In this document: positions 46,201-55,200 of the stretch, in pieces
Position numbering within the stretch: position 1 is the stretch's first letter
Layout of the letters: each line of letters starts with the position of its first letter
Assembly: GCA_002269645.1 (NCBI GenBank)
Contig: NIVC01000161.1
Span: 1-64,000 of the forward strand
Length of the DNA: 64,000 bases
Reading direction: 5' to 3'
Source of the DNA: Macrostomum lignano
Lineage: Eukaryota
Position numbers and translations under genes: made by a program
The notes under the pieces: model-generated
Databases searched by the model: none
Told to the model about the DNA's origin: nothing
What the model saw: the letters and a program-made list of their open reading frames with translations, nothing else

Positions 46201-49200
46201 TCCCTGCAGTTGCTGGGCCACTGCCAGCCTCCCAGATCCTCAGTTGCTGAGCCACCCTCCAAGATCCTCAGTTGCTGGGCCAGCCTCCCAGATCCTCAGT
46301 TGCTGGGCCAGCCTCCCAGAAGATCCTCAGTTTCTGGGCCAGCCTCCCAGAGTGTCAGTGCTGGGCCAGCCTCCCAGATCTTCAGTTGCTGGGCCAGCCT
46401 CCCAGAAGATCCTCAGTTTCTGGGCCAGCCTCCCAGATCCTCAGTTGCTGGGCCAGCCTCCCAGATCCTCAGTTGCTGGGCCAGCCTCCCAGATCCTCAG
46501 TTGCTGGGCCAGCCTCCCAGATCCTCAGTTGCTGGGCCAGCCTCCCAGAAGATCCTCAGTTTCTGGGCCAGCCTCCCAGAGTGTCAGTGCTGGGCCAGCC
46601 TCCCAGATCTTCAGTTGCTGGGCCAGCCTCCCAGAAGATCCTCAGTTTCTGGGCCAGCCTCCCAGATCCTCAGTTGCTGGGCCAGCCTCCCAGATCCTCA
46701 GTTGCTGGGCCAGCCTCCCAGATCCTCAGTTGCTGGGCCAGCCTCCCAGATCCTCAGTTGCTGGGCCAGCCTCCCAGATCCTCAGTTGCTGGGCCAGCCT
46801 CCCAGATCCTCAGTTGCTGGGCCAGCCTCCCAGATCCTCAGTTGCTGGGCCAGCCTCCCAGAAGATCCTCAGTTGCTGGGCCAGCCTCCCAGGATCTCAG
46901 TTGCTATGCAGTTTCAAACTTCAAAGTATTTACGTGCATTTGCACTAATTAACAAGCAGTAATATGGTCTCAAGTTCAACACCCCTATCGCTCTTTCGGC
47001 ATTCTTAGAATTCCAAGAAGCAGCTCCGAGCCGCCGAGCACCGGCTGTCCGAATTTCGCGACCAGAGCCGGCAGTTTGTCCAGTCGAGTTCGGACGCGGC
47101 CGCGATGCTGGAGGCTGACCGCAGCGCTACAGATGTTGAGCAGCGATTTTCCGAGTAAGAATTTATTCGTCATTAATAATCGCTACTAGACTGGGGTTTC
47201 ACATTTGTTTCAGGCGCTGAAAGTTAAGCCAAGTTAGCCACGGTTAGTCACGTCATAGAAAATTTTGTTATTGCCGCAATACATATTCCATTTCATTCTT
47301 CCATCATCATCAAGAGCCCAGGATCGGCTCAATCAATCGGAGGCTGCCGTCGACTCGGAGCTGGAGTACCGTCAGGACCTGACAGCCCGGTTGGACAGCC
47401 TCGGCGCCGGGCTCCGGGATGAGCGCTTCGGCCTCGGCCAGGCGCGCGCGGCCGCTTCGGGCGTTGACGCCGCGCCAACCGAGGCGCTAGCCGCTCGATG
47501 CGCGCTGGCCCGCCAGGAGGTTCTGGTTCAACGCCGTCGCGTCACGGAGATCCTGGAGGAGGTCAGCGTTCGCTATCCGGCCGGCCGGGGCAGCGGCGGC
47601 TCGGTGCCCGCCGAACTGCGAGATCGACTTGGCCGATTGGAGTCCCAGCTGGCCGACCTGGAGACCGAGGTGGAGTCAGCAGCGGCCATCGCGAACGCCC
47701 CAGAGGAGCCGCAGCAGGATGAGATCGCCGCCATCAGGCGGAAGCCCCAGCTGACGATTGAAACGCCGCAGCTCGGCCTCGGTGCTGGCGATGACAGTTT
47801 GGACGAGCCGCCCAACATCGAGGTCCGGCTCACTCTGGAACGGCGTCGCGAGAGTCCCAAGAGTCCTCGTAAGACGCCGCGCCAGTTCTCGCCGTCGAGT
47901 CCGAGGACGACGCCATCAGCAATTTCAGTGCGTCAGAGAACGTCTCCGGTGGTTGCGTCCTCTCGGTTTGATGCCGCCGACCTTCGACCGCCACAACCGT
48001 CGTCTGGATCGCCGACTCGCTCGGTGAAACCGACAGTGCTGGTTGAGGAGGCGCAGACTGTCCGAGTTCACCCAGCTAGACCGCACTCCGCTGCTTCCCA
48101 AGAAAGCGACGGCTCGCCTCGCTCTAAGAAACGACTGCCCAGTCTTGAAGAGTTGCCCTATGAAGTTTCTGAGACTGCTGCTACTGCCAAGCAAAGGCCC
48201 CAGGCCCTGAGCTCGGAGGCCGGCCCAAGTGCTCCCAGCGCGTCTCCAGCCAGAAGTGTTCCGAGTGCTGAGGCGTCTCCAGCCAGAAGTGTTCCGAGTG
48301 CTGAAGCAGTGGTCATTGAAGAGGGACAGAGCACTGAAGCGTCTCCAGCCAGAAGTGTTCCGAGTGCTGAAGCGTCTCCAGCCAGAAGTGTTCCGAGTGC
48401 CGAAGCAGAAGCGTCTCCAGCCAGAAGTGTTCCGAGTGCTGAAGCAGTGGTCATTGAAGAGGGACAGAGCACTGAAGCGTCTCCAGCCAGAAGTGTTCCG
48501 AGTGCTGAAGCGTCTCCAGCCAGAAGTGTTCCGAGTGCTGAAGCATCTCCAGCCAGAAGTGTTCCGAGTGCTGAAGCATCTCCAGCCAGAAGTGTTCCGA
48601 GTGCTGAAGCGTCTCCAGCCAGAAGTGTTCCGAGTGCCGAAGCAGAAGCGTCTCCAGCCAGAAGTGTCCCGAGTGCTGAAGCAGTGGTCATTGAAGAGGG
48701 ACAGAGCACTGAAGCGTCTCCAGCCAGAAGTGTTCCGAGTGCTGAAGCGTCTCCAGCCAGAAGTGTTCCGAGTGCTGAAGCGTCTCCAGCCAGAAGTGTT
48801 CCGAGTGCTGAAGCGTCTCCAGCCAGAAGTGTTCCGAGTGCTGAAGCGTCTCCAGCCAGAAGTGTTCCGGGTGCTGAAGCAGTAGTCATTGAAGAGGGAC
48901 AGAGCACTGAAGCGTCTCCAGCCAGAAGTGTTCCGAGTGCTGAAGCGTCTCCAGCCAGAAGTGTTCCGGGTGCTGAAGCAGTAGTCATTGAAGAGGGACA
49001 GAGCACTGAAGCGTCTCCAGCCAGAAGTGTTCCGAGTGCTGAAGCGTCTCCAGCCAGAAGTGTTCCGAGTGCTGAAGCGTCTCCAGCCACAAGTGTTCCG
49101 AGTGCTGAAGCGTCTCCAGCCAGAAGTGTTCCGAGTGCCGAAGCAGAAGCGTCTCCAGCCAGAAGTGTTCCGAGTGCTGAAGCGTCTCCAGCCAGAAGTG

Positions 49201-52200: not shown

Positions 52201-55200
52201 CTTCACCAGCTAAAAGCGTTGCAAGTGTTGACTTTTCAGCAGCTGCGAGTGAGCCTACCGTGGAAGGCTCATATGCTGAAGCGTCACCAGCGACGAGCGG
52301 CCCCAGTGATGAAGTGTCAACCGCTAGATATTCGCAAATCAAGGATGCCACTAGTTTTGAAGCCTCACCAGCACGAAGCATCTCAGCTTCCAGTGGAGAG
52401 TTTTTATCAGCTGCATCTGTTGTTACAGCTGAAGCATCGCCTTCAAGAGATTTACCGAGTGCTGAAGCCTCGCCTTCAAGAGAGGTACCGAGTGCTGAAG
52501 CCTCGCCTTCAAGAGAGGTACCGAGTGCTGAAGCTTCTCCAGCCAGAAGTGTTCCGAGTGTTGAGGCATCACCGACAAGAGAGGTACCGAGTGCTGAAGC
52601 ATCACCGACAAGAGAGGTACTGAGTGCTGAAGCATCACCGACAAGAGAGGTACCGAGTGCTGAAGCATCACCGACAAGAGAGGTACCGATTGCTGAAGTG
52701 TCACCGACAAGAGAGGTACTGAGTGCTGAAGCATCGCCGACAAGAGAGGTACTGAGTGCTGAAGCATCGCCGACAAGAGAGGTACTGAGTGCTGAAGCAT
52801 CGCCGACAAGAGAGGTACTGAGTGCTGATGTTTCTTTGACAAGAGAAGTACCGAGTACTGAAGTATCACCGACAAGAGAGGTACTGAGTGCTGAAGCATC
52901 GCCGACAAGAGAGGTACTGAGTGCTGAAGCATCGCCGACAAGAGAGGTACTGAGTGCTGAAGCATCGCCGACAAGAGAGGTACTGAGTGCTGATGTTTCT
53001 TTGACAAGAGAAGTACCGAGTACTGAAGTATCACCGACAAGAGAGGTACCGAGTGCTGAAGCATCGCCGACAAGAGAGGTACCGAGTGCTGAAGCATCGC
53101 CGACAAGAGAGGTACCGAGTGCTGAAGCATCGCCAACAAGAGAGGTACTGAGTGCTGAAGCATCACCGCCAAGAGAGGTACCGAGTGATGATGTTTCTTT
53201 GACAAGAGATGTACCGAGTGCTGAAGTATCACCGACAAGAGAGGTACCGAGTGCTGAAGCATCGCCGACAAGAGAGGTACCTAGTGCTGAAGCATCGCCG
53301 ACAAGAGAGGTACCGAGTGCTGAAGCATCGCCGACAAGAGAGGTACCGAGTGCTGAAGTGTCACCGACAAGAGAGGTACCGAGTGCTGAAGCATCGCCGA
53401 CAAGAGAGGTACTGAGTGCTGAAGTGTCACCGACAAGAGAGGTACCGAGTGCTGAAGCATCGCCGACAAGAGAGGTACCGAGTGCTGAAGCATCGCCGAC
53501 AAGAGAGGTACTGAGTGCTGAAGTGTCACCGACAAGAGAGGTACTGAGTGCTGAAGCATCGCCGACAAGAGAGGTACCGAGTGCTGAAGCATCGCCGACA
53601 AGAGAGGTACTGAGTGCTGAAGTGTCACCGACAAGAGACGTACCGAGTGCTGAAGTGTCACCGACAAGAGACGTACCGAGTGCTGAAGTGTCACCGACAA
53701 GAGAGGTACCGAGTGCTGAAGCAGCGCCGATCAGAGACGCTTTAACAATCGAAACGCAACAAACAGGAGATGCGCCGCCAAGTTTCGAAGCTTCACCCGC
53801 CACAAGCTTTGTCAGTGCCGAAGCTTCGCCACCGAGGGCACTTACTAGCGCGGACGCGTCGCCTACGAAAGAGTCTCAGAGTTTCGAGGCCTCTCCAGTA
53901 AGAAGTGTGGAAGGGTCGCCAGCTAAGGAGGCATCAGAGTCCGAGTCAGTATCAGCAGGAAGTGCTAGCGAGTCTCCTAAAAAGTCCCAGTACCCAGCGG
54001 CCGACGTCGACGATCTCGCGGCGTTGAAGGCCGGCCGCGGTCGCGGCAGCGGCGCCTCCAGCCGGGCAGGCGTGGCCGCAGCAGCCGCCGAGCGTGAGTC
54101 GCTCGAACTCGCGCGCAACGTGAAAACTCTGCGCTACGAATTGGAGACGCTGCGAACAACTGGCGGCTTGTCCGAGTCGGACCCCGAGTACGAGAGACTG
54201 GCTGCCGAACTGGCCCAGCTAGAGGCTCGCAGCGCCGCTCAGGTAACTACGAGCTTTATCTTCTTTACTTACTACTAGTTCGGTAGTCTGTATGGAATTT
54301 CTAATTGATGTAAGATCTGTTGTTTATTGTACTCTGTATTCGGTGCCGACATAGTGCGCAAACTGCACACCCGGGGGTGTTCTATTTCTCTAAAGGCTCG
54401 TGTGCGTCTGTCCAGCAGACCGCCACCACCCCATCACTGCGAATGGAACGTGAGACACGCCTTGACTCAAATAGCAGCTTTTTACTTCAAACCGACTGAA
54501 TGAAGATGCGGTCGAGTAGTAAAATAAATTAAAACTGCTGTGTTAGGAGCTGTGGACAATAATGCAGACGAATTGGAGAATGAACAATGAATAAGCCAAG
54601 AATTAATAAATGCCCCGACTGTGCGCAGAGAGAGAGAGACAGACAGAGGTAGGAGCGAATAGTTTCAGGCCAACCCCGGTACGAGTAGGTTGAAGACCAG
54701 AAGCAGAAGGCGAAGCTCTGTGCTTGAGCAAACCCAATGTGCTTATATTCAAAGCCGGAAGCTGTGGAATTTGTTTTAAAATCCGTCTCTCATCTTTAAA
54801 TAAACTACCGTAGCAGTCGCCTGCGGCACCAGACGAAGAGCCGGTCAGACCGCATCTCGCTGTCTCCAGCCGCGGCGCCAACGAACTCGACGCTGCGTTC
54901 CATCGTCTCGAAGCGATGCCGCCGCCGCCACCGCCGCCTCAGCCGTCGCAGTCTTCTGCTGCAACCGCGCCATCCCGGGCCCAGAGCTTGCCCGACGATG
55001 CCCTCAGCATCAGCCACGAGACTGTCTCGATCCTGACCGTCAATCCCGATCGCCAAGCTGTGCTCATCAACGATCAACCGCCTGACTATGATTCGCCGAC
55101 ACTCTTGATGCTGAAACCCGGAGACTCCATCCAGCTGGACGGCGAACGGCAGCCCTCGGCCAGGCCAAACGAGATCCGCTTCCTGCGCAGCGACCGCAGT

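Follow-up and report, generated by a model that had tools for sequence, protein, structure and literature searches.

What does an exon of nearly seven kilobases, carrying more than one hundred Ser-Pro-x-Arg (S-P-x-R) motifs, contribute to a member of a protein family usually described as rigid spectrin-repeat rods, the nesprins? The question is raised by Macrostomum lignano contig NIVC01000161.1, of which positions 1-64,000 of the forward strand were analysed (the window; all coordinates below are window positions). Judged from its sequence, the giant exon at 47315..54242 is a single large coding exon of the M. lignano nesprin-1 (SYNE1/MSP300/ANC-1-type) gene, whose 5' end and KASH-side 3' end both lie beyond the 64-kb window. 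The explanation that we favour, with moderate confidence, is that the exon expands a hinge of the rod, which acts as a flexible, probably phosphorylated spacer. The exon would complete one helical spectrin-type repeat, continue with about 2,100 Pro/Ser/Ala/Glu-rich residues lacking structure, and return to helical-looking sequence. The disordered part would have been built by in-frame minisatellite amplification of a single 33-nucleotide (nt) unit into the SPAR, SPAQ and SPTR arrays, at a hinge that is already present, as a short, disordered and non-repetitive segment, in the nesprin-1 of other animals.

Anatomy and predicted disorder of the giant exon

A single stop-free frame of 2,337 codons (47265-54278, +) contains the giant exon, confirming the claim of an earlier sequence-only reading that the frame stays open through all three repeat blocks. 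Good splice sites are present at both ends, an acceptor ...catcatcaag/AGCCC and a donor CAG/gtaact (the slash marks the boundary), and both edges are joined to neighbouring exons by UniProt models of M. lignano, which bears out the 6.9-kb exon proposed in that reading. Model P0001 runs ...DVEQRFSE/AQDRLNQ... over the upstream edge with 99% identity, and P0003 runs ...EARSAAQ/QSPAAPDEEP... over the downstream edge with 100% identity. The upstream exon closes with GA/gtaaga, leaving two bases of a split Glu codon, and the 3' end of the giant exon at 54242 falls on a codon boundary. With its length of 3n+1, the giant exon is no simple cassette, since a transcript that skipped it would change reading frame; within it, a single strong donor-like site (GTRAGT) occurs, close to its end. 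The upstream exon, the giant exon and the segments of the latter are as follows.

47009..47154 (+): upstream exon (…NSKKQLRAAEHRL…DVEQRFS-E), matched in tblastn by P0001 residues 869-917 with 100% identity
47315..54242 (+): giant exon of the M. lignano nesprin-1 orthologue, 6,928 nt, 3n+1, 2,309 full codons
47316..47735 (+): helical start, three long helices and a short one in the AlphaFold2 model, probably completing a spectrin-type rod repeat
47736..48239 (+): Pro/Ser/Arg-rich linker (SPKSPRKTPRQFSPSSPRTTPS…), non-repetitive, with 10 [ST]-P sites; predicted local distance difference test (pLDDT) score ~40-57, without secondary structure
48240..51185 (+): SPAR array of 69 ASPARSVPSAE units (33 nt), 18 AVVIEEGQSTE units (33 nt) and 8 extra AE (6 nt), found by Tandem Repeats Finder (TRF)
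51186..51359 (+): non-repeat spacer (…KNTMQQTKTRIQTTTTVFTESIESSTSNF…), coding frame open, other frames with 1-4 stops
51360..51785 (+): SPAQ array of 24-nt ASPAQSAE units inside a 96-nt higher-order repeat (TRF periods 24 and 96)
51786..52433 (+): degenerate, non-tandem S-P-rich segment (SPDH, SPAK, SPVR, SPAK, SPAT, SPAR… in translation)
52434..53720 (+): SPTR array of 39 units of 33 nt, consensus ASPTREVPSAE (TRF period 33, 39.7 copies)
53721..54050 (+): degenerate S-P-rich tail (SPAT, SPPR, SPTK, SPVR, SPAK, SPKK in translation), within the part that P0003 matches with 100% identity from 53703
54051..54242 (+): exon end (…ERESLELARNVKTLRYELETLR…EYERLAAELAQLEARSAAQ), helical-looking in translation and composition, the helicity being judged by eye alone

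The arrays were delimited by TRF, which gave a period of 33 with 88 copies for the SPAR array, together with our own segmentation into units. The frame contains 69 SPAR, 32 SPTR, 3 SPSR, 7 SPAQ and 4 SPVQ motifs, and its totals are 108 S-P-x-R, 118 [ST]-P-x-[KR], which is the full consensus of cyclin-dependent kinases (CDK), and 141 [ST]-P. The repeat content described in the sequence-only reading was therefore recovered nearly unit for unit: about 100 S-P-x-R sites had been estimated (108 counted) and about 67 SPAR motifs in AEASPARSVPS units (69 counted), the VVIEEGQST inserts correspond to the 18 AVVIEEGQSTE units among the SPAR units, the AEASPAQS block is the 8-residue ASPAQSAE array, and the roughly 35-40 SPTR/SPSR units are the 39 units of the last array, which holds every SPTR and SPSR of the open reading frame (ORF). 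The 33-nt SPAR unit has 71 matches in the window at up to 3 mismatches, all of them inside the exon, and 0 in 100 shuffles. In composition, P and E each make up 12%, V 9%, R 7% and K 1.7%. Searched by eye, the repeat unit contains neither the optimal mitogen-activated protein kinase (MAPK) motif P-x-S-P nor the 14-3-3 mode-1 and mode-2 patterns, and the GSK3-type spacing S-x-x-x-S(P) does occur in it.

The first 442 exon residues, reaching the first SPAR and VVIEEGQST units, were modelled with AlphaFold2 from the single sequence. Helices are predicted at residues 2-47, 53-86, 99-126 and 133-140, with a pLDDT mostly above 80 over residues 1-130 (mean ~88) and of ~56 in the short helix. In a Foldseek search with this helical start, the top PDB matches were spectrin repeats, all of them weak (E 0.44 or worse). 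From about residue 140 of the modelled 442, pLDDT falls to ~40 and secondary structure is absent; the disorder prediction suggested in the sequence-only reading as a check thus gave predicted disorder from the linker into the first array units. Pfam finds no family over the whole giant exon.

Gene identity and the hinge in orthologous nesprins

The gene can be identified through the exons that follow the arrays. With the 1,017 residues downstream of the giant exon as query, an exhaustive HMMER search of representatives returned as closest relatives beyond Macrostomum the nesprin-1-like protein of Lingula (E=2e-37), that of Tubulanus (3e-30) and then those of Patella, Owenia and Branchiostoma, and all named matches among these relatives were nesprin-1-like, SYNE1 or KASH-domain proteins. 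In Pfam scans, the proteins of Tubulanus and Patella have KASH at 84 bits, and Spectrin_SYNE1 is found in all three proteins scanned. With nesprin-1-like proteins as the best non-Macrostomum relatives, two of them with Pfam KASH, the earlier suggestion of a nesprin-like gene stands, and the homology evidence shows the gene to be a nesprin-1 relative. Within the gene itself, Pfam Spectrin exceeds its 29.9-bit cut-off at 22531-23034 (52.2 bits) and in P0004 (47.7 bits), and falls just under it at 1999-2595 (25.8 bits) and 57204-58142 (27.2 bits); in addition, Spectrin_SYNE1 reaches 21.7 bits at 9722-10969, below its cut-off of 35, and Spectrin_Anc-1_2 13.7 bits, below its cut-off of 28. Spectrin matches therefore lie on both sides of the giant exon, which itself opens with three confident predicted helices, as expected if it interrupts a spectrin rod as had been read from the sequence. 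A search with the upstream spectrin exons 18482-18802 and 22531-23034 gave no match at E<=0.001, M. lignano proteins included.

The downstream exons also place the arrays within the rod. One of them is the anchor of the comparison:

57129..58013 (+): first downstream spectrin-repeat exon (Pfam Spectrin 27.2 bits), where the Lingula phmmer alignment begins, continuing through later exons

In phmmer, residues 357-487 of the downstream query align with 1114-1244 of the Lingula nesprin-1-like protein, and residues 482-1013 with 1281-1807 (136 bits), in colinear order; the alignment spans 530 residues and begins directly after a hinge. This Lingula hinge, residues 755-1128 (~370 residues), is a Ser/Thr/Pro/Gly-rich, non-repetitive disordered segment, of which amphioxus has an equivalent, and in orthologues it lies ~2,600-2,850 residues before the KASH domain. 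Because the downstream exons are colinear with the first spectrin repeats after the Lingula hinge, the array can be regarded as a lineage-specific expansion of an existing hinge. The likeness lies in the position relative to the following spectrin repeats, in the richness in S/T/P/G and, in Lingula, in a few SPxK/R motifs. The difference is one of scale, since the Lingula and Branchiostoma hinges have ~150-370 non-repetitive residues and 0-4 SPx[KR], whereas the M. lignano segment has ~2,100 residues and 118 [ST]-P-x-[KR]. The density of SPx[KR] per 100 residues is 0.03-0.27 in orthologues and 5.0 in M. lignano. The sequence-only reading had named a lack of SPxR in orthologous repeats as a refuting outcome, and for distant orthologues this is what is seen: the nesprin hinges of distant phyla are short and non-repetitive, with the same 0-4 SPx[KR].

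Two further observations concern the hinges of other animals. In Tubulanus, Patella and Branchiostoma, the short isoforms predicted for nesprin-1 (P0045, P0047, P0049) start inside the hinge, and in the long amphioxus isoform P0083 the hinge is internal, at about residue 4289, which hints at a conserved internal start site at the nesprin-1 hinge. In Owenia, the nesprin-like protein P0048 has a second disordered hinge nearer the C-terminus (residues 2184-2398) with seven [ST]Px[KR] (SPPR, TPNK, TPDR, SPER, SPKR, SPKK, SPER), so that nesprin hinges with clusters of proline-directed sites also exist outside Macrostomum.

In total, four UniProt fragments of M. lignano match the window, with 91-100% identity. 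Two of them, P0002 and P0004, are near-identical second gene copies, with 91-99% identity to 34557-49322 and 53703-63998. M. lignano underwent a recent genome duplication, and the second copies fit such a duplication or allelic contigs. The frame switch of P0002 at the start of the exon may be an assembly indel or a sign of a damaged copy.

Coding status and origin of the arrays

An open frame within an array is weak coding evidence by itself, because a triplet-period intronic array in the same window, the 30-nt array at 18963-20871, yields ORFs in three frames, of 714 amino acids (18848-20992, +), 497 (19373-20866, -) and 373 (19770-20891, +). ORFs of this type, from triplet-period intronic arrays, could become spurious protein entries. 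More informative are the non-repeat parts of the exon (47315-48239, 51186-51359, 51786-52433 and 53721-54242; 2,269 nt in total), in which the coding frame alone is stop-free in all four segments and the stop-carrying frames hold 1-27 stops. In the degenerate segment 51786..52433, 4-27 stops are found in four of the five non-coding frames, and the fifth, an antisense one, is open like the coding frame. Moreover, all periods and length variants inside the exon are triplets (33, 24 and 6 nt), whereas about 20 of the ~24 intronic minisatellites of the window have non-triplet periods, in agreement with the sequence-only reading, which had contrasted the exon with intronic arrays in the same way. 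Two antisense ORFs over the SPAR array, 47925-51209 (-) and 48158-51214 (-), of 1,094 and 1,018 amino acids, were rejected as genes; they are a by-product of the stop-free repeat unit, and the antisense frames all carry stops in most of the non-repeat parts.

These results bear on the alternative that the arrays are not translated as read, being removed from the mRNA by internal introns or a downstream-starting transcript, or being an assembly artefact. Such a view would agree with the public models that end at the array edges and with the out-of-frame P0002, with an older assembly that evidently broke at the arrays, with the predicted short isoforms of orthologues that begin in the hinge, and with the long ORF that the triplet-period intronic array likewise yields. 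It is nevertheless opposed by the exclusive openness of the coding frame in the four non-repeat segments between and beside the arrays, by the single strong donor-like site near the exon end, and by the 3n+1 length that would make whole-exon skipping shift the frame, and we consider it very improbable.

The arrays themselves also carry traces of a constrained peptide. Among the units of the SPAR array, 22 differences are synonymous over 8.7 sites and 15 are nonsynonymous over 24.3 sites; in the SPTR array, all 19 changes seen in the Ser codon of S-P are synonymous, and the Arg codon does not vary. When distinct unit variants of both arrays are pooled, 17 of 52 possible synonymous and 26 of 146 possible nonsynonymous changes are seen (Fisher p=0.023). 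When the consensus unit of SPAR is compared with that of SPTR, differences are seen at 6 of 11 third codon positions but at only 3 of the 22 other positions (p=0.021), and amino-acid changes occur only at the x of SPxR (Ala to Thr) and at the residue after Arg (Ser to Glu). These sequence comparisons show that the peptide unit, and above all the Ser and Arg of S-P-x-R, is under weak-to-moderate purifying selection.

With regard to origin, the SPAR and SPTR units are identical at 24 of 33 nt, and the SPAQ unit is what remains of the SPAR unit when the nine bases encoding Val-Pro-Ser are removed and Gln takes the place of Arg. Unit comparison thus indicates that all three arrays derive from one ancestral 33-nt unit (A-S-P-x-R-x-V-P-S-A-E). 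Of the 69 SPAR units, 36 are identical to the consensus DNA, and this exact identity indicates recent amplification or homogenisation. The ~24 minisatellites of the window, roughly one per intron, each have their own unit sequence; examples are 7722-9713 (17 nt x116), 16146-17761 (32 nt x51), 18963-20871 (30 nt x64), 39130-40061 (20 nt x47) and 62894-63814 (31 nt x32). Judged by this unusually high density, arrays are generated very actively in this genome, and the exon arrays are probably the in-frame survivors of that process. One 28-nt family (CCTCCCAGATCC[C/T]CAGTTGCTGGGCCAG) occurs in two neighbouring introns, at 44079-45082 and 46161-46905, flanking the exon 45150-45614, and suggests the spread of an array between introns, or a duplication.

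A search of 5.8 billion proteins with the arrays alone as query found no related array; outside M. lignano only low-complexity matches were returned, namely canid MAP7D3 and an unnamed ENA protein. The MAP7D3 match was rejected as a homologue, its 8-residue SP repeat being convergent: in the dog and fox protein (P0017), residues ~330-490 consist of a tandem E/D-x-S-P-E-x-S-V with 44% identity to the SPAQ block, which suggests that this microtubule-associated protein expanded an SP repeat independently.

Could the arrays, then, be a near-neutral or neutral in-frame minisatellite expansion, harmless in a hinge, without specific function and probably variable in length? The abundance of minisatellites at about one per intron, the near-identity of the units, the lack of a related array in the database searched and the convergent rise of low-complexity SP repeats such as that of MAP7D3 would all suit an expansion of this kind. 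The synonymous bias speaks against it, both within and between arrays (p ~0.02 each), as do the peptide unit, kept while four unchanged codons diverged synonymously between SPAR and SPTR, and the preservation of frame by every length variant; mere tolerance is accordingly a reading that we hold to be decidedly unlikely.

The preferred reading of an expanded, translated hinge also has observations weighing against it, which are collected here. The public M. lignano models break at both array edges, P0001 ending at '...SASPARSV' and P0003 beginning at 'EVPSAEAAPIRD', and in none of them do the arrays stand in the correct frame; 'RLQPEVFRVLK' is the out-of-frame translation that the second-copy model P0002 gives for the SPAR array. 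Translation through the arrays is deduced from sequence, and the copy number of the arrays may be mis-assembled. The selection tests are small, with variants that are few and non-independent, and third-position CpG mutation bias could inflate them. The positional homology of the hinge is anchored on its C-terminal side only, because the upstream rod (P0001 residues 1-1060) gave no match to the orthologues in phmmer. The recovered fragments P0003, P0004 and P0043 end inside the rod, and the gene's own KASH domain, lying beyond the window, was not recovered. Lastly, by a simple charge-hydropathy (Uversky) analysis the SPAR block, rich in Ala and Val, would count as 'folded', although composition and AlphaFold2 argue otherwise.

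Spacer mechanics, phosphorylation and known counterparts

If the hinge is translated as proposed, its disordered part comprises ~2,112 residues with a contour length of ~760-800 nm, and the segment would behave as a flexible spacer of great length, or as an entropic spring, connected in series to a rigid rod. An insert of ~2,100 disordered residues (~0.8 µm of contour) would dominate nesprin mechanics and reach. By analogy with known substrates, the 118 [ST]-P-x-[KR] sites would be good substrates for proline-directed kinases (CDK, MAPK), and phosphorylation of the [ST]-P sites would shift the charge of the segment and so its extension: net charge per residue is ~-0.05, and would be ~-0.19 if all 141 [ST]-P sites each bore two negative charges. 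The high number of sites is best understood as a by-product of repeat amplification, and should not be taken as evidence of selection for 100 sites. For the kinase-switchable spring put forward in the sequence-only reading, neurofilament KSP tails and the XSPXR motifs of titin offer analogies that make it plausible.

Several giant cytoskeletal proteins provide points of comparison. Titin carries XSPXR and KSP repeats that ERK1/2 and Cdc2 phosphorylate, and the persistence length of its disordered N2Bus and PEVK springs is altered when these are phosphorylated (PMC5498327), while obscurin carries SPXR copies in its non-modular C-terminal tail (PMC2196875). The Z-disc XSPXR and M-band KSP of titin and the SPXR of obscurin resemble the M. 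lignano arrays in that S-P-x-R is repeated in non-modular inserts of giant cytoskeletal proteins, but they comprise a handful of copies, form no long tandem array and have no homology to the M. lignano arrays. Titin PEVK and N2Bus share with the exon a long disordered segment (PEVK up to ~2,000 residues), rich in Pro/Glu/Val, in series with folded repeats, and the same arrangement is found here, where the predicted disordered segment follows the confident helices with which the exon opens, and the exon is flanked by spectrin exons upstream and downstream. The PEVK units are 26-28 residues long, in contrast to 11 and 8 in M. lignano, where Arg replaces the Lys of PEVK; units and composition thus differ from the PPAK/poly-E elements of titin PEVK, and neither a Pfam match nor sequence similarity assigns the exon to that class.

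A second comparison is with neurofilament-H, whose KSP brushes have almost no net charge and are compact until they are phosphorylated, and then expand (PMC11626179). The KSP tails of neurofilament-H/M likewise consist of tandem short disordered units with a Ser-Pro site beside a basic residue and are near neutral when unphosphorylated, and the exon carries its 118 tandem [ST]-P-x-[KR] sites in a predicted disordered segment without any domain. The two differ in that the tails of neurofilaments project freely from a filament as side-arms while the M. lignano segment lies in series inside a rod, and in that the motif is K-S-P rather than S-P-x-R, with no sequence homology between them. Neurofilament tails carry ~40-50 sites, against more than 100 in M. 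lignano.

Lineage-specific tandem repeats have also been described within the nesprin family itself, as 20 x 108 and 19 x 101 amino acids in Drosophila Msp300-PE (PMC11230431) and as 6 x 903 amino acids in C. elegans ANC-1 (PMC8139857). These giant KASH-family genes likewise have near-identical internal repeats confined to a narrow lineage; their units of ~100-900 residues are predicted to be folded (beta sandwich or helical bundles), whereas those of M. lignano have 8-11 residues and are predicted to be disordered, with a kinase consensus. Nesprins with expanded repeats are thus known, as are SPXR/KSP phospho-arrays in giant proteins of the cytoskeleton, and the M. lignano exon is a variant of these.

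A stronger claim would be that the arrays are a selected phospho-switch, in which ~100 CDK/MAPK sites are needed and graded phosphorylation, for example with the cell cycle, tunes the length or stiffness of the tether or makes a charged brush. The 118 full-consensus sites, the Ser and Arg codons as the best conserved of the motif, a block that is near neutral unphosphorylated and would be strongly negative phosphorylated, as in neurofilament-H (PMC11626179), and the response of titin's disordered springs, in persistence length, to phosphorylation (PMC5498327) all point in this direction. The SPAQ array, however, expanded despite having lost the Arg, the 36 of 69 SPAR units identical to consensus speak for recent amplification rather than a long-maintained number of sites, and the hinges of distant orthologues manage with 0-4 such sites, so that a selected switch is possible but unlikely.

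Its most far-reaching form is a rheostat on the tether of the LINC complex (linker of nucleoskeleton and cytoskeleton) with more than 100 sites, in which CDK/MAPK would charge ~140 Ser-Pro sites and reversibly alter the reach and stiffness of the nucleus-cytoskeleton connection, with an 'FHA' domain in the next exon that might read the phospho-sites. This is a speculative idea to which we give little credence; it could apply in dividing neoblasts or in contracting tissue and, if true, would make this the first nesprin with mechanics set by multisite phosphorylation of a repeat array.

The flexible, probably phosphorylated spacer that we prefer has consequences of its own. The array may serve as a natural test case for the tuning of a disordered tether by multisite proline-directed phosphorylation, and M. 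lignano is amenable to transgenesis. The locus illustrates a route by which disordered regions may grow, namely by the in-frame amplification of a minisatellite within a hinge that was already there, in a minisatellite-rich genome. Since the public models stop at the arrays, ~2,000 array residues have no entry in the protein database, and the current M. lignano annotation is short by that much of the nesprin protein.

Two further segments of the window deserve mention. At 29665-30942 (+), a 425-residue ORF in a GC-rich patch encodes His8, poly-Pro, poly-Gln and several SP sites and could be another disordered exon of the nesprin gene; two other frames are open there, and no public model covers it. 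The other segment is the exon that directly follows the arrays:

54814..55947 (+): next exon, poly-Pro followed by a ~330-residue non-spectrin segment, mapped by P0003 and P0004

The ~330-residue segment is possibly beta-rich, and the UniProt fragments carrying this exon bear the name 'FHA domain-containing', the FHA domain being putative: 54814-55947 has no Pfam match at E<=0.1 and no PDB sequence match, and its AlphaFold2 model, with a pLDDT of 37.6, is unusable for a fold search. If the next exon does encode a phospho-threonine reader, its adjacency to 32 S-P-T-R units would be notable. One relative of this exon was found, the unnamed ENA protein P0052, with 34% identity.

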